IMG/VR virus record: IMGVR_UViG_3300033049_000066
Location: 229,279-293,278 of that record
DNA length: 64,000 nucleotides
Direction: 5' to 3' (one strand)
Part shown: in pieces, positions 6,175-64,000 of the stretch
How the letters are laid out: each line of letters opens with the position of its first letter
Position numbering within the stretch: the stretch's first letter is position 1
Translations under genes and position numbers: made by a program
Notes under the pieces: generated by a model
What the model was told of the DNA's origin: nothing
Databases searched by the model: none
Seen by the model: only the letters and a program-made list of their open reading frames with translations

Positions 6175-6972
6175 ATGAACGAAAAAACAATACATTTTAT
6201 CGCTGGTTTACCACGTGCAGGTAGTACGCTACTCTGTAACATTTTAAATCAAAATCCAAGATTTCATGCTACAAGCACCTCGGGCATTTTAGACATTGTA
6301 CTCGCTATACGCAACCAATGGGAAAATGTTAACGAATTCCAAGCAACTCCAAATAAGCTCGGAAAAGACGCAGTAATGAAACCAATTTTACAAAATTACT
6401 ATTCAACAGTCGAGAGGCCGGTTGTATTTGACAAGTCGAGAGGATGGCCCGGGTATTTAGAACTTGCTGAACATTGTCTAGGCACAAAAGTCAAGATGAT
6501 TGTCCCGGTTCGTAGAGTCGTAGATATTCTCGCTTCGTTTGAAAAATTAACAAGAAACAATTCACGGACTTGGCAAATGCCGCAAGAGAAATCACACTTC
6601 TTTGAGATGCAGACGCTCGCTGGTAGGGCAGATGTTTGGATGAGAAACGATCAGCCTGTGGGCATTGCCTACAATCGCGTAAGAGATGCGATAGACAGGG
6701 GCTTTGGCGAACAACTACATTTTGTGGAATTTGAAAATTTAACCGCGCATCCTGAGGCTACAATGGCTGCTTTGTACGAGTTTCTCGGTGAGGTGTATTT
6801 TGCGCATGATTTTTTAAATGTTGAGCAAAGCACAAATGAGAACGATGACGTCCATGGTATCCCTGGACTCCACACGATCCGACAGGTAGTGAAGCCGTTT
6901 GACGTAGATGCTAAGAAAATCATCGGAGCGGATGCTTACAAGAAATACGAAAATGCGGAATTTTGGAGATAG
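6175..6972 (+). CDS. P-loop sulfotransferase family protein
   Basis: PAPS-binding loop FIAGLPRAGSTLL, DKSR, VRRVVDILAS, V.FENL...P. Confidence 0.85.
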   Translation: MNEKTIHFIAGLPRAGSTLLCNILNQNPRFHATSTSGILDIVLAIRNQWENVNEFQATPNKLGKDAVMKPILQNYYSTVERPVVFDKSRGWPGYLELAEHCLGTKVKMIVPVRRVVDILASFEKLTRNNSRTWQMPQEKSHFFEMQTLAGRADVWMRNDQPVGIAYNRVRDAIDRGFGEQLHFVEFENLTAHPEATMAALYEFLGEVYFAHDFLNVEQSTNENDDVHGIPGLHTIRQVVKPFDVDAKKIIGADAYKKYENAEFWR

Positions 6973-6976
6973 ATAA

Positions 6977-9940
6977 TTGATTAAAATTAAAAGTTTGGTT
7001 GTAAAAAACTTTATGAGTATCGGAAACGCAAGTCAAGCCGTGGACTTTGACCGTGATGACTTGACCCTCGTTCTTGGGGAGAATCTTGATCTTGGGAGCA
7101 ATGGTGCGAGAAATGGTACCGGGAAGGCGCAACCGTTGTACTCAAAAATAAAAACACCCGGTGGCTGGGCTACAATGGGCGATATGGTCGTTGGGCAAGC
7201 CATCACCACACCTACCGGGGGCAGTGCTGAGGTCAGTGGCGTTTTCCCACAGGGTGAGGTAGAAACATACAGAATTCATTTTTCTGATGGTAGGCAAACA
7301 GATGCTTGCAAAGACCATCTGTGGAAAGTTTACTCGCACTCGTTTAAAGATAAATGGCAGGTTCTAACTACTGCTGAGTTAATTTCGCATACAGAAAAAT
7401 ATAAAAATCATAAAAATAAATCTACGTACTACAAATATGTTCCGTTGATTATCCCAGAAAATATTGCAGACATTAAGTTGCCATTTGATCCATATTTCCT
7501 TGGCGCGATGCTCGGAGACGGTGGCATGACCGTACACGGTATCGGGTTTACAACTGCTGATGACGAAATGTTTGAAAATATGAAACAGGTTCTGCCAGAA
7601 AATTATCAGATAACAAAAAATCATTATGATGACTACGGATATTCATTAAAATTTATTAATCGAAAAAAGTACAGCACATTACGACTAGGATTATCTGCGC
7701 TGAAGTTATACGGAACGAAATCAGCAACGAAATTTATTCCAGAAATATATAAAAATGCCTCCATTAATCAAAAAATAGAACTTATACAAGGGATAGTAGA
7801 CACCGACGGTTATGTCGCAAAGAAAAACGGGTCACTTTCTATTACAACCGTCAGCAAGCAAATGGCGGATGATATTCAAGAAATAATACAGTCTATTGGC
7901 GGGATCGCTAAAATAAAAATTAAAACGAACTGTGGGTATAAAAAAGACGGCATATTTATACCATGTCAGGACGCCTACACCGTTTGCATCACATACCATA
8001 CTCCAAAACTTTTAGCTCGACTTAGCCGGAAAAAAGATCTCTTACCGGGTGAGAATTATCAGTACAAAAATAGAAAATTAAGAATCGATCATATAGAATA
8101 TATTGGTAAGATTGAATCCCAATGTATTATGGTCGAACACTCAGATCACTTATACATTACAGACAATTATATTGTTACACATAATACGACGTTGATAAAC
8201 GCTCTGAGCTATGGGCTGTACGGCAGTGCGCTTTCTGAGATTCGCGTGAACAATCTTGTCAACAAAACTAACAGAAAAAATATGCTCGTGTCGGTTGAGT
8301 TCAGCATCGACGAGGCGCAGTACAGAATTGAAAGGGGCAGATCTCCAAATGTGCTGAAATTTTACAAAAATGATCTTGAGCAGAAGGATGAGGATGGTGC
8401 GCAGGGCGAGAACAGGGAAACGCAAAAAGAGATAAATGATCTACTGGGGCTGAGTCACGCGATGTTCAAACACGCTGTCGCGCTAAACACCTACACCACC
8501 CCGTTTCTGTCTCTCAAGAATGCTGACCAGAAAGATATTATCGAGGAGCTTCTCGGAATCACTGTCCTTACCGAGAAGGCCGAGGCACTGAAAGCGGTCA
8601 ACAAGATCACAAAGGATGGGGTCAAGGAAGAAGAATTCCGGCTTGAGACTATCATGAAGGCGAATCTGCGAATTGACGAACAGATTGAGGGGTTGAAGCG
8701 CCGGCAGCGGATGTGGCAGATCTCCCACAATAACACAGTAGATGGTTATACTTCAAAGATTGAAAAATTGATGGTGGTCGACATCGAAGACGAGATTGCT
8801 AAGCATAACCGCAATGCGAAAATCCGGGTTGATACTGACAAGAAAAACACCAAGGGCAAAGCAGCAGTTGACAAATTTAACGCTGAACTAAAAATTCAAA
8901 AGGATCGTGAGATTGCCGCCATTGACAAATTCAACTCTGCTGTGCTAGAATGTAATCGGTGGATCAAACAAATTGAAAATGATACAAAGGCCCAGGAGCG
9001 TCGGTCGCAAGCGTTACAAAGAGATATTGATTTACTAGAAGATCACAAGTGCCACGCCTGCGGGCAGGATCTCCATGATGAGACACAGGAAGCAAATATT
9101 GCGGCTAAGAAAACAGAATTAACAGAATGTGCAATGCAGATTCTATCTAATCAAACGCAGGATACAGAGCAGAAACTAAAACTTGCGGACCTTGGCTCAC
9201 CGCCGGTAACAAAAGAAGCTAAGAAAGCCAAAACGTTCAAAGAAGAGCAGTACAAGGGCAACCTCACTTTTTACAAAACCATCGACGAGGCTCACGGACA
9301 CAAGAGCTCGCTCGCTACGCTCACATCGCAGCTTGAAACCGCTGTAGACACTGCTGATCCGTACGTTGAACAAGTAGACGAAATGGTTGCTAGTGGGCTA
9401 GTTGAGGTCTCTTACGAATCTTTAAATCAGCTTGTCGAGCTACAAGAGCATCAGGCATTTCTACTAAAACTTTTAACGAGCAAAGATAGTTTCATTCGCA
9501 AGAAAATCATTGAGCAAAATTTAGCGTACTTGAATGGGCGGCTTACATATTACCTCACTGAAATCGGGCTTCCGCATCGTGTGCGGTTCATGTCGGATCT
9601 TAGCGTTGAGATTACAGACTTGGGCAGAGACCTGGACTTTGACAATTTGTCACGGGGTGAGAGGACTAGGCTGATTTTGTCTCTGTCTTGGGCGTTTAGG
9701 GATGTCTGGGAAAGTCTGTACAGCCACATCAACTTACTTTTTGTAGACGAGCTTGTCGACAATGGACTTGACACAAATGGCGTCGAAGCCGCTATTAAAA
9801 TTATGAAAAGTATGGCGAGGGAGCGTGGGAAAAGTGTTTGGCTGGTCTCGCACAGAGAAGAATTAATTAGCCGCGTGAATAACACAATGAAAGTGATTAA
9901 GAGCGGTGGCTACACTGAATACAGTAGCGAATTAGAATAG
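6977..9940 (+). CDS. gp46: Recombination ATPase (Rad50/SbcC-like), intein-containing
   Basis: KNFMS; Walker A NGTGK|TT; zinc hook CHAC; signature LSRGE; Walker B LFVDE; H-loop VSH. Confidence 0.95.
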   Translation: MIKIKSLVVKNFMSIGNASQAVDFDRDDLTLVLGENLDLGSNGARNGTGKAQPLYSKIKTPGGWATMGDMVVGQAITTPTGGSAEVSGVFPQGEVETYRIHFSDGRQTDACKDHLWKVYSHSFKDKWQVLTTAELISHTEKYKNHKNKSTYYKYVPLIIPENIADIKLPFDPYFLGAMLGDGGMTVHGIGFTTADDEMFENMKQVLPENYQITKNHYDDYGYSLKFINRKKYSTLRLGLSALKLYGTKSATKFIPEIYKNASINQKIELIQGIVDTDGYVAKKNGSLSITTVSKQMADDIQEIIQSIGGIAKIKIKTNCGYKKDGIFIPCQDAYTVCITYHTPKLLARLSRKKDLLPGENYQYKNRKLRIDHIEYIGKIESQCIMVEHSDHLYITDNYIVTHNTTLINALSYGLYGSALSEIRVNNLVNKTNRKNMLVSVEFSIDEAQYRIERGRSPNVLKFYKNDLEQKDEDGAQGENRETQKEINDLLGLSHAMFKHAVALNTYTTPFLSLKNADQKDIIEELLGITVLTEKAEALKAVNKITKDGVKEEEFRLETIMKANLRIDEQIEGLKRRQRMWQISHNNTVDGYTSKIEKLMVVDIEDEIAKHNRNAKIRVDTDKKNTKGKAAVDKFNAELKIQKDREIAAIDKFNSAVLECNRWIKQIENDTKAQERRSQALQRDIDLLEDHKCHACGQDLHDETQEANIAAKKTELTECAMQILSNQTQDTEQKLKLADLGSPPVTKEAKKAKTFKEEQYKGNLTFYKTIDEAHGHKSSLATLTSQLETAVDTADPYVEQVDEMVASGLVEVSYESLNQLVELQEHQAFLLKLLTSKDSFIRKKIIEQNLAYLNGRLTYYLTEIGLPHRVRFMSDLSVEITDLGRDLDFDNLSRGERTRLILSLSWAFRDVWESLYSHINLLFVDELVDNGLDTNGVEAAIKIMKSMARERGKSVWLVSHREELISRVNNTMKVIKSGGYTEYSSELE
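7127..8185 (+). mobile_element. Class-3-type intein (353 aa) with LAGLIDADG endonuclease in the gp46 Walker A motif
   Basis: Starts with Ala (AQPLYSKIKTP). WCT signature: DHLW, SQCIMV, VTHN. Endonuclease motifs LGAMLGDG and GIVDTDG; +1 residue is Thr. Confidence 0.92.
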
Positions 9941-10471
9941 CTACTTATAATAAAAGTTAGTAGTACTAAACTCCTCGAAGAGTTTACTCAAACCTTTTGT
10001 TAATTTACGAGATTTGGGATAAGGTGGTACTTTCTTTTTAGGATATTTTGCTTTGAAAAGTTTGATCATTTTATTATAGGATGATTTTTTAACTTTTTGA
10101 GCTTTAGGAACCTCGGATGGATGGATATAAACCTCCCCGTCTTCGGTATACGCACCGGCTTCTAAGTAGTCAGCTAAGTTGCGTAAAAATGTAGGAAGAT
10201 CGGTCGGGTGTTTGGATTCATCGGCCCCATAATAACGTTTCCAATTATTCGTTATTTTTCCTTCAATGGCATTTGCCCGGAACTCAATCGCATTGCGAAT
10301 TGTTCCTTTGTTAGGTGCGTAAGGCTCGGAATTTAGCTTATGTATATGATCTAACACGCATTTGTCGATAGGGATTTTAATCCCCAGTAATGGACAAACT
10401 TCGTTATTTTGTTTATGAAGTTTTTCTTTAAGGATCTTGATATCCTTGACTTTGAGCTCGACGTATTGCAT
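9941..10471 (-). CDS. Endonuclease VII (gp49)-like His-Me nuclease
   Basis: Q...CPL...VLDHIH...G.IR.....AN.IEGK...FLRNLADYL...IHP. Late promoter at 10478-10483. Confidence 0.8.
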   Translation of the reverse strand: MQYVELKVKDIKILKEKLHKQNNEVCPLLGIKIPIDKCVLDHIHKLNSEPYAPNKGTIRNAIEFRANAIEGKITNNWKRYYGADESKHPTDLPTFLRNLADYLEAGAYTEDGEVYIHPSEVPKAQKVKKSSYNKMIKLFKAKYPKKKVPPYPKSRKLTKGLSKLFEEFSTTNFYYK

Positions 10472-10539
10472 TGTAATTATTTATTGTGTAAAACGAACAC
10501 TAGAAAATTTTTAAGATGAGCGCAGCGGACTAAATATCA

Positions 10540-11240
10540 AGCACGTGGTAGATGCATAGAAATGGCATGCTACTTCTAGGATTTTTATTATGGACATTTT
10601 GACTATACGTCGAAGAAGTAAAACAGGTATAAGGTTGGTGGGCCGAGCGTAATTCCACCGTGCAAGTATTATGAAATGTACCGCTGCGCAAACGTCTTGC
10701 TGTTTAGGCGCCTCAAATTGACTACCCGAAAGGATGCTTTAAAGTGACGCGCCCATGTGCGATCAACTTTCAATTGTTGTAAATAGTAAGGAAATATGAA
10801 AATAATTCCGAGGCAAATAATTGTAAATTGCGAGATAACAGATGTCCTGTTTGCGAACAGAAACATGGCTTGCGAATGCAACTTGTCTAGTGAGATGGAT
10901 GCCATATTTGAATGGTGGAAGACCAATCAAACACCCATCTGCACATAACATCAGCTAGGTATAAGGCGGTTATGTGCGCGTTGAGCACTGCATGTAATGA
11001 GGTGATAGCAAAACCTACCTTTCTTAGTTAAGCGATTAGTGGACTAAGTGTTGTATTATACCTAGCGAACGTTCCATGCGTTTTAGTCGTCGTCTTTGGC
11101 GGCGTGGCACCTTGGCTCACTCTCCAATTCGAACTCATTCGCTAACGCTCAATCATATGCATTACTTCTATTTTAATTTGTGTTTACTAATATGAGTGTT
11201 GAAGCGATAGCGACAACACGAATAGATCTGCTTCAGATCT
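10540..11240 (+). ncRNA. Putative large structured non-coding RNA; boundaries and strand uncertain
   Basis: About 840-nt gap with no convincing long ORF. TAAATA at 10531, many hairpins, and an 11-bp loop-distal pairing (10954-10964 with 11056-11066). Confidence 0.55.
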
Positions 11241-11313
11241 TCTATACTAAACTAATTGCTTAGAAACAAATGGAATGTCACGACCACGACTTGCGTTAAA
11301 AAGTTTATATTTT

Positions 11314-11550
11314 CTAAAAAAACGGAAGGCCGGATTTTTGCGTGGTTTCGAGATTATCCTCTGCGATCTTTGTAATTAGCTTTCGTTCTGCCGAACTTAA
11401 ATTCATTGCGGTGTCGTACTGAATACCCCCACGCATAGCCCATGCATGATGTAAGCATTCTTTTCGTATAGCGAGGGATTCTTTTTCTAGTTGATCAACG
11501 AACTTGGATATTTGCTCAGAGTTTAAGATTGTTAGCTTTGATCGAAAAAA
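11314..11550 (-). CDS. gp51/T-like tail chaperone extension, probably reached by -1 frameshift
   Basis: WAMRGGIQY..AMNLSSAER motif. No good start of its own; lies in the -1 frame behind the heptamer T TTT TTC. Confidence 0.7.
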   Translation of the reverse strand, partial: FFRSKLTILNSEQISKFVDQLEKESLAIRKECLHHAWAMRGGIQYDTAMNLSSAERKLITKIAEDNLETTQKSGLPFF

Positions 11551-12434
11551 GATGTCATGTCTAACGTAAAGTGCTGATCGTACGTATGATTGCAAACATG
11601 TGTATTTGGCTTAGTATCTTTGGCGCCTTCTTCATCATTATCTAGTACTTCATCTTTGATTAGCTCGGTACATTTAATTTTTAGAGGCTTAAGAATTTCT
11701 TTAGTCTTTTGTTCAATGACTGAGGCTTTGATCTTTTTGTACATAGAAGTTTCACAATTCTTTAAAAATTCTAATATATGTTCTTCTTTACTAACTGTAC
11801 ACTCTGGTGTTGTAATTGAGGCTATATTCTTCGCGAGCGTAGTGAGTGTGTACTCTGATACTTTTTTGAACGTGTCAGAGAGTAATTTAATTTGATCTTC
11901 TTCTTTTAGTGTAGAATCAACCAATAAGTGACTCAGCTTCTGCTCTTCAAACTGTAATTTATTGTTTTCGTTTAAATCTTTGTAAGTCATTGGCTTAAAT
12001 GCGATAGTTAAATCACCTATAACCATCACTTTACTGTAGTCAGTTGGTACAATTGAGTCAAGAACCACTCGTAAATCGACGTTGTACCCAGCAACATTAG
12101 CACAACTTGGGCATTTGGTTTCAATTTCCATATCATGGCCGAAGCTAGCGATTCTAATCGCGCACAGTACGGCGGTTAAGTCCGTTACCGGCATCGTCCA
12201 AGCATCTTTAATGGAAGGAATACAGCTTTCTATAACCTGTACGACCGCTGATCCATTGAACAAAGCGTCCGGGGTTTTATACGTTATCTCGTCAATCGCC
12301 GTCATGGGTAAAACCGGCACTTCACCAGTCTCAGGTAGATCAAGTTTTCCATCACCGTAACCTTCACCCTTGCTTGGTAATGCTAAGTGAATAGAGGCGG
12401 TTCTAAAGTACTGCGATAAAGGATTTTCGCTCAT
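11532..12434 (-). CDS. Baseplate hub assembly/tail assembly chaperone (gp26-like)
   Basis: NPL..YFR...LPS.G, PMTAIDEI, AIRIAS.G and CPSC motifs. Divergent from the tape-measure gene. Confidence 0.8.
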   Translation of the reverse strand: MSENPLSQYFRTASIHLALPSKGEGYGDGKLDLPETGEVPVLPMTAIDEITYKTPDALFNGSAVVQVIESCIPSIKDAWTMPVTDLTAVLCAIRIASFGHDMEIETKCPSCANVAGYNVDLRVVLDSIVPTDYSKVMVIGDLTIAFKPMTYKDLNENNKLQFEEQKLSHLLVDSTLKEEDQIKLLSDTFKKVSEYTLTTLAKNIASITTPECTVSKEEHILEFLKNCETSMYKKIKASVIEQKTKEILKPLKIKCTELIKDEVLDNDEEGAKDTKPNTHVCNHTYDQHFTLDMTSFFDQS

Positions 12435-14484: not shown

Positions 14485-14492
14485 TATAAATA
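14485..14492 (+). promoter_or_regulatory. T4-type late promoter TATAAATA (representative of about 20 TAAATA sites)
   Basis: TAAATA also occurs just upstream of late genes at 12448, 16233, 16935, 26486, 27209, 33408, 45190, 46968, 50990, 53641, 54140, 58595, 60236, 62949 (+) and 2948, 10478, 12465, 35224, 38007, 46898 (-). Confidence 0.85.
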
Positions 14493-26464: not shown

Positions 26465-26576
26465 GTACTAATTCAATTTTCTTCATAAATAAGACATACG
26501 CTAGAATAATCTAGTTTATGCGGATCCAACCGCGTAGCCCTTAGAACGGCAATTCTTAAACAAAGGAGAAATTCAA

Positions 26577-27128
26577 ATGGGACGACCAATCAACAAACGA
26601 TACTTGGGTGAGCCAACTGTCACAGGTAACGAAATTAAAGTACAATTTTTCAACGGCACAGCTTCAGTAAATGGCTGGATCGTCAAGCAGCTAGGCGCTA
26701 AAAAGTTTCGCTGCACAGATGGTACAGACACAGCAGATTGTCTGTTAGTTGACAAACTAGCAGCAGCTCTGATAGCTGGTGAAATGTCAATTAGTGTACG
26801 AGACGACAGCGCCGCAGTTAAGCAGATCGTTAAAATCGCTGGACGTAAAGTGACACTTGGGTCAGGCGAAAGCATTCCTTGGGACTTTAGCAGTTCAACA
26901 AGTGACGAACGTGTCGAAGTTGAAGAAGGTGGCGACCAATCAGCTCTGACAATTAGCATTCTTGACGCAACCGCTGGTGTAACGTACGCAATCGCAGTAC
27001 CAGGAACCACAGATTTCACACTACTTGGCGCAGCAGACAGCACAGCAGCAACCGAGTTTGAAATGAATGATGTTACTCCAGAAGGTACCGGAACTGTAAC
27101 AGCAGTCGAAGATACATTCGGTCTATAA
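26577..27128 (+). CDS. Virion structural protein
   Basis: MGRPINKRYLG...WIVKQ.G.KKF; late promoter, strong RBS and own terminator. Confidence 0.7.
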   Translation: MGRPINKRYLGEPTVTGNEIKVQFFNGTASVNGWIVKQLGAKKFRCTDGTDTADCLLVDKLAAALIAGEMSISVRDDSAAVKQIVKIAGRKVTLGSGESIPWDFSSSTSDERVEVEEGGDQSALTISILDATAGVTYAIAVPGTTDFTLLGAADSTAATEFEMNDVTPEGTGTVTAVEDTFGL

Positions 27129-39902: not shown

Positions 39903-40256
39903 TCAATGACTTACTAGAGCAGCTCTCGGGGATTCCCCGATCACCTGCTTTCCGTGCCTGTACCACTCCTTCGTGCCATCAGCTAGTTCAACAGCCGGCC
40001 CGCCTATTCTGTGTAGTTTACCGTATCTGTACCACCACGTAGCACCATTTGTAAGTGCCATAGCCGGGCCGCCTATTCTGTGTAATTTTCCATTTTGGTA
40101 CCAAAATTTGTCACCATTTGCGTACTCGATAGCAGGCCCATCTTCTCTGTGTGATTTTCCATTTTGGTACCAAAATTTGTCACCATCTTTGTCAACACGA
40201 ATATCGTACTTTAAGCGATTGAATGTTTCTTGTGCTGTACCTTCAATCACGAGCAA
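39903..40256 (-). CDS. HREDGPA-repeat (MORN-variant-like) protein
   Basis: Repeats of WY.NGKLHR..GPA. Confidence 0.85.
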   Translation of the reverse strand: MLVIEGTAQETFNRLKYDIRVDKDGDKFWYQNGKSHREDGPAIEYANGDKFWYQNGKLHRIGGPAMALTNGATWWYRYGKLHRIGGPAVELADGTKEWYRHGKQVIGESPRAALVSH

Positions 40257-40943
40257 AATCCTTCATAGCTTCGTGATAATCACTAGCAAAATCCTTCATA
40301 GCTTCGTGATACGCATCTTCATCTTCGTAGCCACCATCAGCGTAGATTTTGTAAGCAGCGAAGTGAGCCTCAGCCTCTTCCACCACTCGCTTCATTTCCT
40401 CAATAGTAAAAGAAACAGTAACCTCTTCCCCGCAGTATCCACCCGGAACAGCCACCTCAATCTCACCGTAAGAATCCACCTCAACGTTAAACATCACCTT
40501 TCTGTTGTATTCTATCATGCTATCTCCTACAAAATGTCGTCTATTGCGCGTATCACTTCATCGTACGCAAATTCCTTGCCATCATCTACCGCACGTTCTT
40601 CGTCCGACCCGTACAAAAACTGATCGGTAACACGGTACCGAGCCTCTTCACACTCAGCTCGTAGTTTTAGCAAGTTTGCTTCAAAATACTCGGCTCTCGC
40701 TTTGTATACGCTAAATTCTTCCATTGTAAAAGTTGCTTTTGGCATAATATTCTCTTAAAAGTTGCGTACGAATTCAATTTCGCTAAGCTTGAATGTTTTG
40801 TAACAAAATGAGCCCTGAAACGGCATATTCATGTTGCTAACACGTACGGTACCTTTAACAATATCAGTATCCATTACACGTGCAAATTCGTTCATATGTC
40901 CTTTTTTAAACTTCTTAATGCGTACTATATCCATTATATCCAT
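40243..40943 (-). CDS. Three small early ORFs (40243-40518, 40527-40745, 40755-40943)
   Basis: Operon behind a promoter repeat, with RBSs. Confidence 0.7.
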
Positions 40944-41092
40944 AATCTTTCCTTTGCTTGTTATCTAACTGTTATATACATTATATGACAAGTAGCGCCA
41001 AAGGTCAACCTCTATTTGCAGATATTTAAGATTATTTTAGATTATTTTAGATTATTTAAGGGCTCTCTTGGACACGATGACGGTTTATAGAC

Positions 41093-41124
41093 GCAAGTGC
41101 CGATGTTATAACATCGGCACTTGC
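41093..41124. repeat. Perfect 32-bp palindrome
   Basis: GCAAGTGCCGATGTTA|TAACATCGGCACTTGC. Confidence 0.95.
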
Positions 41125-41174
41125 ATCACGGTTTGGTTGATTCTATTATGCTATTTCCTACGAAATATCGTTTA

Positions 41175-41336
41175 CTACCTTACTAACTCGTAACTATCAT
41201 ATTCTTCTTCATTTATGAAGAAGTATTCTTCGTTACCATCAGTAGTTATTACCACAATGTGACTGTCGTGAACCTCTGTAACTATTAGTTCTTCACCACT
41301 GTCTATATATCTAATTGTGTTGTTTGTTTTGAACAT
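41175..41336 (-). CDS. Small acidic protein (53 aa), not in the ORF track
   Basis: AGGAG RBS behind a promoter repeat; MFKTNNTIRYIDSGEELIVTEV... Confidence 0.7.
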   Translation of the reverse strand: MFKTNNTIRYIDSGEELIVTEVHDSHIVVITTDGNEEYFFINEEEYDSYELVR

Positions 41337-41431
41337 TCGTTTTCTCCTACGAAATATTGTTATCTAACTGTTATATACATTATATGACAAGTAGCGCCAA
41401 AGGTCAACCTCTAATTGCGGTTATTAGCAAA

Positions 41432-41689
41432 TTATTCGTAATTTTCGCTTAAAATCTGTTCATTTGCTTCATTTAGCGCAATAGGAACAATTTTTACATG
41501 ATGTTCACTAATGCGCATGTGATATGTGCTAAAAGGCTTATTATATTTCTCAATAAATAACGCCAGTTCCTTCTCGGCCGTTTTGACCTTGTTGAAAATG
41601 CCGACAATGCTTGTCGTAGACCCATAATTGCCAGATCGGCCCGGAATTGATGCGATTATCATGTAACCTGTTGATGTAAAATGATTCAT
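41432..41689 (-). CDS. Small early protein
   Basis: Sits exactly between two promoter repeats. Confidence 0.7.
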   Translation of the reverse strand: MNHFTSTGYMIIASIPGRSGNYGSTTSIVGIFNKVKTAEKELALFIEKYNKPFSTYHMRISEHHVKIVPIALNEANEQILSENYE

Positions 41690-42091
41690 AATCTTTCCTT
41701 TCTCTCGTTATCTAACTGTTATATACATTATATGACATATAGCGCCAAAGGTCAACCTCTAATTGCGGTTATTAGCAAATTAAATTTAACTGTGCTAAGT
41801 CGTTGATTTTAAAATAATGCTGTTTTGTGGTGTTTTATACTATATAGTGTATCAACACGCACGATAAGAAACAAAAACGCCGTTAAAAACCACTATTCTT
41901 ATATAAATCAATGACTTACCAATATATTACTCTGCATAGTAACTCTATATAAATCAATGACTTACACCATTCTGCCGTCTTTCCTGGATAAGTGTATATA
42001 TAATAAAGTACAGAAGATAAAAATAAAGGTAGACATTTAGGATTACTTGTCGTATAATAGTAATACAAATTAGGAACTAGGAGTTCATAGC

Positions 42092-63057: not shown

Positions 63058-64000
63058 ATGGCCTCATTAGCAGATATTCGAGCTCGCTTAGCAGCTCAAG
63101 ACACAAAAAAATCATCATCATTCACAGACGGCGAAGGCCCGGTATACCCACATTGGACAATTGACGAAGGACAGACTGCCATCGTGCGTTTTCTAAATGA
63201 CAACGATCCAACGAACACATTCTTTTGGGTTGAACGCGCAATGTTTAAATTTCCGTTCAAAGGAGTAAAGGGTGACCCAACAGCATCACAGAATACAATC
63301 GTTCAAGTGCCCTGCATGGAAATGTACGGCGAGAAAGATGCTGTCCTGGACGAAGTCCGAGGCTGGTTCAAAGATACCTCAATGGAAGAAATGGGACGTA
63401 AATACTGGAAGAAACGTACATATATTTTTCAAGGTTTTGTACGTAGCGATCCAAAAGGTGCGGCCGGTCCAGAGAACCCAATCCGTCGCTTCATGATTAG
63501 CCCACAGATTTTCACGCTAATTAAAAGCAGCTTAATGGATCCAGAAATTGAATATTCGCCAACCGACGTAAACAAAGGTTTAGATTTTAGAATTGCTAAG
63601 CAAGAAAAAGGTGGATATGCGGATTACACAAACTCAAGTTGGGCTCGCAAAGAAACAGCGTTAACCGACGAAGAAACCGCAGCCATCGCAAAATATGGCT
63701 TAAATAATCTTGTTGAGTTGCTACCACCTAAGCCTACCACTGAAGTGCAGGCTGTCATTCGTGAAATGTTTGAAGCTTCTGTTGACGGCGAACCCTATGA
63801 TCCTGAACGTTGGGCATCATACTACACTCCAAAGGGCATCTCAAAAGTTGACAACGCAGCAGCCGTTATAGTACCAGCAGCACCAGCAGCCGAAGCAGCA
63901 CCAGCAGCCGAAGCAGCACCAGCAGCCGAAGCAGCACCAGCAGCCGAAGCAGCACCAGCAGCCGAAGCAGCACCAGCAGCCGAAGCAGCACCAGTTGTCG
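63058..64000 (+). CDS. gp32: Single-stranded DNA-binding protein (runs off the window edge)
   Basis: MASLADIRARL, VRFL, FFWVER, VPC.EM, YWKKR.Y.FQGFV, GGYADY..S.W.RKE. Both a sigma70-type promoter (62864-62892) and a late promoter lie upstream. Confidence 0.9.
   Translation, partial: MASLADIRARLAAQDTKKSSSFTDGEGPVYPHWTIDEGQTAIVRFLNDNDPTNTFFWVERAMFKFPFKGVKGDPTASQNTIVQVPCMEMYGEKDAVLDEVRGWFKDTSMEEMGRKYWKKRTYIFQGFVRSDPKGAAGPENPIRRFMISPQIFTLIKSSLMDPEIEYSPTDVNKGLDFRIAKQEKGGYADYTNSSWARKETALTDEETAAIAKYGLNNLVELLPPKPTTEVQAVIREMFEASVDGEPYDPERWASYYTPKGISKVDNAAAVIVPAAPAAEAAPAAEAAPAAEAAPAAEAAPAAEAAPAAEAAPVV
63883..63990 (+). repeat. Six perfect 18-nt repeats encoding (PAAEAA)6
   Basis: CCAGCAGCCGAAGCAGCA x6. 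Confidence 0.97.

Follow-up and report, generated by a model that had tools for sequence, protein, structure and literature searches.

A predicted large structured RNA of a T4-like phage with a 5' domain distantly related to the Polynucleobacter-1 RNA

Genomic context of the locus

The analyzed window, a 64,000-nt stretch of DNA, is part of a 293-kb contig of a T4-like phage (IMGVR_UViG_3300033049_000066), of which an identical copy was found in a second sample, providing no sequence variation. The interval of interest lies between two sets of genes. On one side, an endonuclease VII-like gene (9941-10471, - strand; PHROG 423) follows a gp46-like gene that carries an intein, while on the other side a conserved 93-aa ORF (11314-11595, - strand) is located next to a gp26-like baseplate-hub gene (11532-12434, - strand). 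No tRNA genes were detected in the window, and no Rfam family reached its gathering score in the interval. The preliminary description had considered this the largest non-coding gap in the window, yet at a 100-aa threshold the stretch at 40624-42091 is longer.

In order to evaluate whether the interval could be coding, six-frame translations were inspected and showed stops in all frames. Gene callers predicted nothing here, and stop-to-stop pieces had no translated similarity in 97 loci from related phages. A 50-aa ORF preceded by a Shine-Dalgarno-like AAGGAA is present at 10796-10948, and in other relatives the same gap holds unrelated small ORFs. However, the former is interrupted by a 41-nt insertion relative to the homologues, and the longest open stretches (35-89 codons) differed between relatives, with no frame open in all of them.

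The stems listed in the preliminary description were found at the positions given there, with the exception of TCGCTAACGCT, which starts at 11139 and not at 11138. Taken alone, these stems were not beyond chance. The minimum free energy of the 701-nt fold was only marginally better than that of shuffled sequences (z = -1.97 on the + strand and -1.77 on the - strand), 9-bp stems are expected by chance, and perfect inverted repeats of 11 nt or more within 250 nt occurred at about 8 loci in the window (about 4 expected), the loop-to-downstream complement described below being one of them.

A family of RNAs at a conserved genomic site

Relatives were retrieved through the gp26-like and endonuclease VII-like proteins, and nearly always kept an ORF-poor interval at this place. 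A permissive Rfam scan of 1.4 kb resulted in a weak hit to Polynucleobacter-1 (RF01718) at 10633-10779 on the + strand (21.5 bits, E 0.039), below the gathering score of 37 bits and not reported under the stricter filters of whole-window scans. Interestingly, the same family was found at the same place and strand in loci from related phages, designated L080 (105.3 bits), L074 (104.7 bits), L053 (38.5 bits), L040 (30.4 bits) and L001 (23.8 bits). As in the window, the hits in L080, L074 and L053 lie beyond the gp26 gene and its small neighbouring ORF, on the strand opposite to them.

In all of these loci, conservation extended far beyond the 141-nt Rfam model, covering central hairpins and a two-hairpin terminal module. 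A covariance model of the terminal module of types C and D (R1) detected 64 loci at E up to 0.012 (63 of them below 1e-4), in 64 of 95 sources and always on the strand antisense to gp26. This module was 93.7% paired, with 14 of 16 pairs changed on both sides. Over the whole 3' part of 55 distinct C- and D-type RNAs, an RNAalifold consensus of 76 pairs was 93% canonical, with 33 covarying pairs, and G.U outnumbered A.C 606 to 50. The 3' domains were conserved in over 100 loci and are not in Rfam. Thus, the Rfam motif is the 5' domain of a 450-900-nt RNA lying between the gp46 side and the gp26 baseplate-hub block.

Several types were distinguished: C, with a canonical Polynucleobacter-1 5' domain; D, the majority, with a different 5' domain; B, intermediate; A, the closer kin of the window, with an exact TATAAATATC box, two GNRA-capped leader hairpins and a 15-bp helix closing the Polynucleobacter-1 domain; X, comprising loci L204 and L210; and W, the type of the window itself. 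None of them was found in GenBank phages, and a blastn search with the gap of the window gave no match in that set either. A genome scan with a G+C-rich 18-mer gave mostly chance hits, although four true ones were copies in metagenome-assembled genomes labelled as bacterial, located on phage-like contigs carrying gp26, gp46 and SegE-like genes.

The RNA of the window could not be aligned by blastn to type A, apart from the terminal module and the small ORF, and in the first 97 loci the only match was the small ORF at 11314-11595. A metagenome scan with gp26 returned no close relative of the window (the best was 53% identical), while exact searches with GACTACCCGAAAGGATGC and GAGCACTGCATGTAAT gave, respectively, only the window's own contig and only chance hits besides self. 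A protein search with the endonuclease VII-like gene, followed by contig look-ups, resulted in two full-length relatives (L183 and L184) and three partial ones (L187-L189), and a DNA pattern from an invariant stretch gave a fourth full-length one (L208). Pairwise identities among W-type RNAs ranged from 59 to 78%.

Comparative support for the structure

RNAalifold gave partly different or empty structures on the sparse alignments. Therefore, 18 helices plus the pseudoknot proposed in the preliminary description were defined by hand in window coordinates and counted on a seven-sequence alignment. A total of 91.4% of cells were paired, against 33-45% when partners were slid by 1-3 columns, and 28 of 104 pairs had changed on both sides, against 2-7. 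None of 500 shuffles reached the observed values for cells paired, for pairs or cells changed on both sides, or for the covariation score. It should be noted that the structure was drawn from the window sequence itself, and that only four full-length W-type sequences exist, two of them 78% alike, so that several apparently independent changes may be single events. Nevertheless, confidence that the locus encodes a real structured RNA is high, and the possibility of a decaying pseudogene, or of a cluster of small protein genes with stems arisen by chance, is remote and already largely refuted by these counts.

Wobble pairs were informative with regard to the strand. In the W type, G.U pairs outnumbered A.C pairs 47 to 14, which, as in the C and D types, favours a folded RNA read from the + strand rather than DNA hairpins. 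A structured replication origin, the alternative raised in the preliminary description, acting either through a persistent R-loop primer formed by a promoter-proximal transcript, as may be the case at T4 oriF and oriG, or through DNA cruciforms, would be consistent with the promoter-like box at the 5' end, the intergenic location next to recombination genes and the presence of adjacent nuclease genes in every type. However, covariation preserves an intricate fold that a primer does not need, and no shift in composition or GC skew was observed at the site. This reading is therefore regarded as very unlikely.

Anatomy of the W-type RNA

The 5' end is preceded by a promoter-like box, ACTAAATA, at 10529-10536, and the inferred RNA start is near 10541-10545. 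The preliminary description had reported a late promoter, but the exact box TATAAATA is absent here, and that of the window departs from the T4 late consensus at two positions of eight. At the homologous place, W-type relatives carry N-TAAATA, while all five group A relatives carry the exact box, TATAAATA(TC). Exact boxes also precede structural genes elsewhere in the window, for example at 14485 before the portal gene. The box is followed by hairpin H1 (10548-10573; GUAG+AUGC / GCAU+G bulge+CUAC; 98% paired, 4 of 8 pairs changed on both sides, with many G.U pairs) and by the conserved UUCUAGGA at 10574-81. Relatives carry one or two such hairpins with GCGA loops.

The Polynucleobacter-1-like domain (10633-10779) comprises six helices in the order of the Rfam family: P1 (10637-41/10655-59), P2 (10666-69/10678-81), P3 (10694-97/10706-09), P4 (10714-20/10771-76), P5 (10725-26/10732-33) and P6 (10745-50/10759-65), with the conserved junction ACUACCC..GGAUG enclosed by P4. 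Compensatory changes were observed in P1, P2, P3 and P6; P1, which corresponds to GGTGG/CCACC, showed one G-C to A-U exchange. A second pseudoknot, between AAACAG (10621-10626) and the P3 loop CUGUUU (10700-10705), is only tentative, since these segments were invariant in 6 of 7 sequences and the single exchange, AAACAAA and UUUGUUU in L208, was matched by eye.

Downstream, hairpin H4 (10790-10809; GGAA/UUCC) was weakly supported (53-80% paired), every relative having a hairpin here but with a different inner stem. Helix H5 (GGCAA 10812-16 / UUGUC 10883-87) was 100% paired, the counterparts in relatives being, by eye, GGCUG/CAGUC, GGUAU/GUACC and GGGCAU/GUGUCC. It encloses a variable region with a window-specific 41-nt insertion that contains CTGTT-TGCG-AACAG (10847-60), and this stem consequently has no comparative support. 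The nested helices H6 (GAUGG/CCAUC) and H7 (UUUGA, UGGU / ACCA, UCAAA), at 10893-10940, were 100% and 85% paired, with 2 of 5 and 6 of 9 pairs changed on both sides, respectively.

The central domain contains hairpin H8 (10941-10977), formed by GCACATAAC (10941-49) and GTTATGTGC (10969-77), which was 80% paired with 3 of 9 pairs changed on both sides. Its loop (10954-64) is perfectly complementary to 11056-66, forming an 11-bp pseudoknot that spans the conserved stretch 10983-98 and hairpin H10. This pairing was kept in 95.5% of cells and showed two independent compensatory changes (G-C to U-A in L183 and L184, and G-C to A-U in L208), along with one A.C mismatch in L183 and L184. Because both the hairpin stem and the loop pairing covary, the pseudoknot topology is credible. 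The most conserved stretch of the centre (10983-11016; GAGCACUGCAUGUAAU .. GAUAGCAAAACCU) was invariant or nearly so in the four full-length W-type RNAs, although the candidate helices examined around 10999-11021, as well as GUGC/GCAC, were not supported. Hairpin H10 (11023-11048; CUUAGU/ACUAAG) was 100% paired, with 2 of 6 pairs changed on both sides.

The G+C-rich hairpin H11 (11088-11114; CGUCGUC/GGCGGCG), preceded by a U run and followed by the invariant GGCACCUUG, was 96% paired, with stems that differ between relatives and a position that matches the G+C hairpin of groups A, C and D. The segment UCGCUAACGCU (11139-11149) is complementary to the H12 loop (11203-13) with one mismatch, but the partner loop is absent in the other W-type RNAs and this pairing is not conserved within the type, although a like pairing can be drawn by eye in C-type RNAs. 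Finally, the terminal module (11196-11240) consists of hairpin H12 (GUGUUG/CAACAC, 11196-11219, loop with AGCGAUAGCGA), a GAAU linker and hairpin H13 (AGAUCUG/CAGAUCU, 11224-40), and its stems covary across types A and W. It is probably the 3' end, or a terminator used by one or both strands: H13 is a 7-bp hairpin followed by a poor U tract (UCUAUAC) on the + strand, it was flagged as terminator-like only on the - strand, and in the wider family its pairs show as many A.C as G.U. C and D types have CUUUAA-like tails.

Relationship to Polynucleobacter-1 and to the other types

The kinship of the 5' domain with RF01718 is supported by helix order and junction, by the synteny described above, by hits of the W-type relatives to the same family at the same place (17.0-20.7 bits), and by the X type, which links the two. 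A W-type profile hit L204 and L210 at E 1.3e-6, and positions 714-860 of L210 scored 36.1 bits (E 9e-5) to RF01718. On the other hand, a covariance model built from the domain of groups A and B (R2) gave no hit at 10633-10779, even with filters off and E up to 10, and nhmmer profiles of the group A leader plus Polynucleobacter-1 part and of its middle part gave no hit in the window. With respect to the terminal module, a profile of the group A variant (GAAU linker between the hairpins) hit 11190-11242 at E 0.003 over the whole window, while model R1 (loop GAGCGAUAGCGAA, second hairpin directly abutting) detected neither the window nor group A. The central domain of types A, C and D (the conserved CCGUUG.. 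hairpin and the GGUA-CCGG-NCAA-CCG-CC hairpin) was not detectable in the window by nhmmer, the W-type centre having its own conserved sequences. The 5' domain is treated as a remote homologue of RF01718, and not as a member by the criterion of Rfam; confidence in the family kinship is high, slightly below that in the structure itself. The statement of the preliminary description that no family could be recognised is only partly right, as it holds for four fifths of the RNA but not for the 5' fifth.

Neighbouring genes and possible roles

The 5' neighbour differed between phages. In L208, a SegE-like gene on the same strand replaces the endonuclease VII-like gene found on the other strand in the window, and gp46 lacks the intein, while the RNA, the small ORF and gp26 are unchanged. 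The RNA is therefore not an appendage of a particular upstream gene. Nevertheless, a cis-acting boundary element, namely a long folded 3' region and terminator or insulator that would stabilise upstream messages and stop read-through and antisense transcription, without a function in trans, was also considered. The RNA always lies where two convergent gene blocks meet (gp46 side on + and baseplate hub on -), in C and D types it starts right after the stop codon of the upstream SegE-like gene, the terminal module lacks strand bias in wobble pairs, and Polynucleobacter-1 was rated as probably cis-regulatory in the 2010 survey (PMC2864571). Yet 450-900 nt with at least 18 conserved helices and long-range pseudoknots is far more than a terminator needs, and groups A and W have a promoter-like box of their own, so that this alternative, although the leading one, seems unlikely.

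Endonuclease genes of three unrelated families (endonuclease VII-like, SegE-like GIY-YIG, and HNH) were found at the 5' side of the RNA in different phages. This observation, together with a size and pseudoknotted architecture typical of large ribozymes, would be compatible with a catalytic or mobile RNA, such as a self-cleaving or self-splicing ribozyme or an intron-like remnant, tied to the adjacent nuclease. However, no Rfam intron or ribozyme family matched the region, even at E up to 10, and there are no flanking exons of a split gene. That the nuclease families differ fits homing endonuclease genes settling beside a conserved target, as segB appears to do in the T4 tRNA cluster, better than a dedicated partnership, although the endonuclease VII-like gene may simply be the gp49 resolvase of the phage. 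A catalytic or nuclease-linked role is regarded as unlikely, while the recurrent homing-type nucleases suggest that the gene is also a landing site for mobile elements.

Taken together, positions 10541-11240 (+ strand, ends approximate) are best explained as an independent gene for a roughly 700-nt, multi-domain, pseudoknotted non-coding RNA, a divergent W type of a large family located between the gp46/gp47 side and the gp26 block in more than 100 related uncultured phages of the T4-like group, that of the window being a jumbo phage. This supports the core inference of the preliminary description, whose chosen ends (10540 and 11240) coincide with a conserved promoter-like box and a conserved terminal hairpin. 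In the absence of transcript data, it is inferred that the RNA is transcribed late from its own promoter and ends at the terminal hairpin; as convergent genes follow, it cannot be a leader. Its size, GNRA-capped hairpins and long-range pseudoknots indicate a compact tertiary fold, and a trans-acting, stable RNA, probably expressed late during virion production, is favoured, although this role rests on analogy only. Confidence in this explanation as a whole is moderate.

Comparison with known systems

Polynucleobacter-1 has been catalogued since 2010 as a short, probable cis-regulatory motif of Burkholderiales and fresh water (Weinberg et al. 2010, PMC2864571), the only paper found to mention it. 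The window shares with it six helices in the same order and the ACUANCC-loop-GGAYG junction, and members above the threshold occupy the same syntenic place and strand in related phages. In contrast to the 141-nt Rfam model, the RNA described here is about 700 nt long, with leader hairpins, central domains, pseudoknots and a terminal module that Rfam does not hold, and is a phage RNA with no downstream gene on its strand.

A functional analogy with the phi29 packaging RNA, probably a much shorter (about 170 nt), early-transcribed podovirus RNA that acts in trans in virion production, is speculative, and no Rfam match was found here. The T4 oriF/oriG origins may rely on a promoter-driven transcript close to recombination functions, but would need a DNA unwinding element rather than a conserved RNA fold.

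Large folded RNAs without a known job, such as GOLLD, ROOL, OLE and raiA, are among the clearest open problems in bacterial and phage RNA biology, and few classes are known. The RNA of the window most resembles GOLLD and ROOL (PMC5737381; PMC12286853), which are large (about 600-800 nt), multi-domain, rich in covariation, often phage- or prophage-borne, and of unknown function. No match to GOLLD, ROOL, OLE or other large RNAs in Rfam was detected at the gathering threshold or at E up to 10 in the region, nor at the gathering threshold in the relatives scanned. Moreover, it is not near tRNA genes, and is carried by lytic-type T4-like phages at a fixed syntenic site. More tentatively, the Polynucleobacter-1 motif could be the tip of a new class of giant ornate phage RNAs (450-900 nt), nearly universal in a large clade of uncultured freshwater T4-like phages and diversified into at least six subtypes at a fixed genomic site, which would act as a catalytic or self-assembling RNA particle during late infection, as a lytic-phage counterpart of GOLLD and ROOL.

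Genomic context of the RNA locus

The gene adjacent to the 5' end of the RNA was an endonuclease in every subtype, yet it belonged to different families: SegE-like GIY-YIG in types C and D and in the full-length W-type relative L208 (L058 10162-10638, - strand; L208 2275-2616, + strand), HNH in type X (L204 3474-3872, - strand), and endonuclease VII-like in types A and W (window 9941-10471, - strand), suggesting that the RNA gene is a landing site for homing endonuclease genes. In addition, the gp46-like recombination nuclease subunit encoded at 6977-9940 (+ strand; 987 aa) carries an intein with LAGLIDADG and Hom_end domains at approximately residues 265-339. The homologues in L208 and in L245 (a family member from a genome contig) aligned to residues 1-50 and 401-987 only, and thus lack this intein. 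A sulfotransferase-family gene was found at 6175-6972 (+ strand), between the gp47-like phosphoesterase and the gp46-like gene, an unusual insertion in that conserved pair.

An ORF of 93 aa with a TTG start (11314-11595, - strand) overlaps the end of the gp26-like gene by 64 nt. Although it was conserved across relatives (46-66% identity over its whole length), it matched no Pfam or PHROG family, and it was not called as a gene in the public record.

Family members were also detected in MAGs labelled Bifidobacterium, Flavobacteriales and Haliscomenobacter (genome contigs L245, L221, L227 and L233). The contigs carry gp26, gp46 and SegE-like genes, and are therefore probably phage contigs binned with bacteria, rather than evidence of host carriage.

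Other candidate structured elements

The only Rfam hit above threshold in the window was the freshwater-2 RNA (RF02980) at 26500-26579 (+ strand), with 51.5 bits against a gathering score of 49.9, located directly upstream of the ORF at 26577-27128. A partial match to isrG (RF01390) was observed at 63764-64000 (- strand; 32.4 bits, E 7e-5), far below the gathering score of 100 and cut off by the end of the window, which may be due to chance or may represent part of another structured RNA. The longest ORF-poor stretch of the window at a 100-aa threshold (1468 nt) was located at 40624-42091, with long perfect inverted repeats nearby, namely arms of about 16 nt at 40092/40166 and a 14-nt hairpin at 41093-41114, although nothing was found there in Rfam.

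In the canonical Polynucleobacter-1-bearing RNAs (C-type RNAs of L080, L074, L013 and L006), inspection of the alignment by eye only suggested that a hairpin loop (AUAGCGU or UUAGCGU) is complementary to a site about 100 nt downstream (ACGCUGU or ACGCUAA), with matching changes, representing a loop-to-downstream pseudoknot analogous in position to that of the window.
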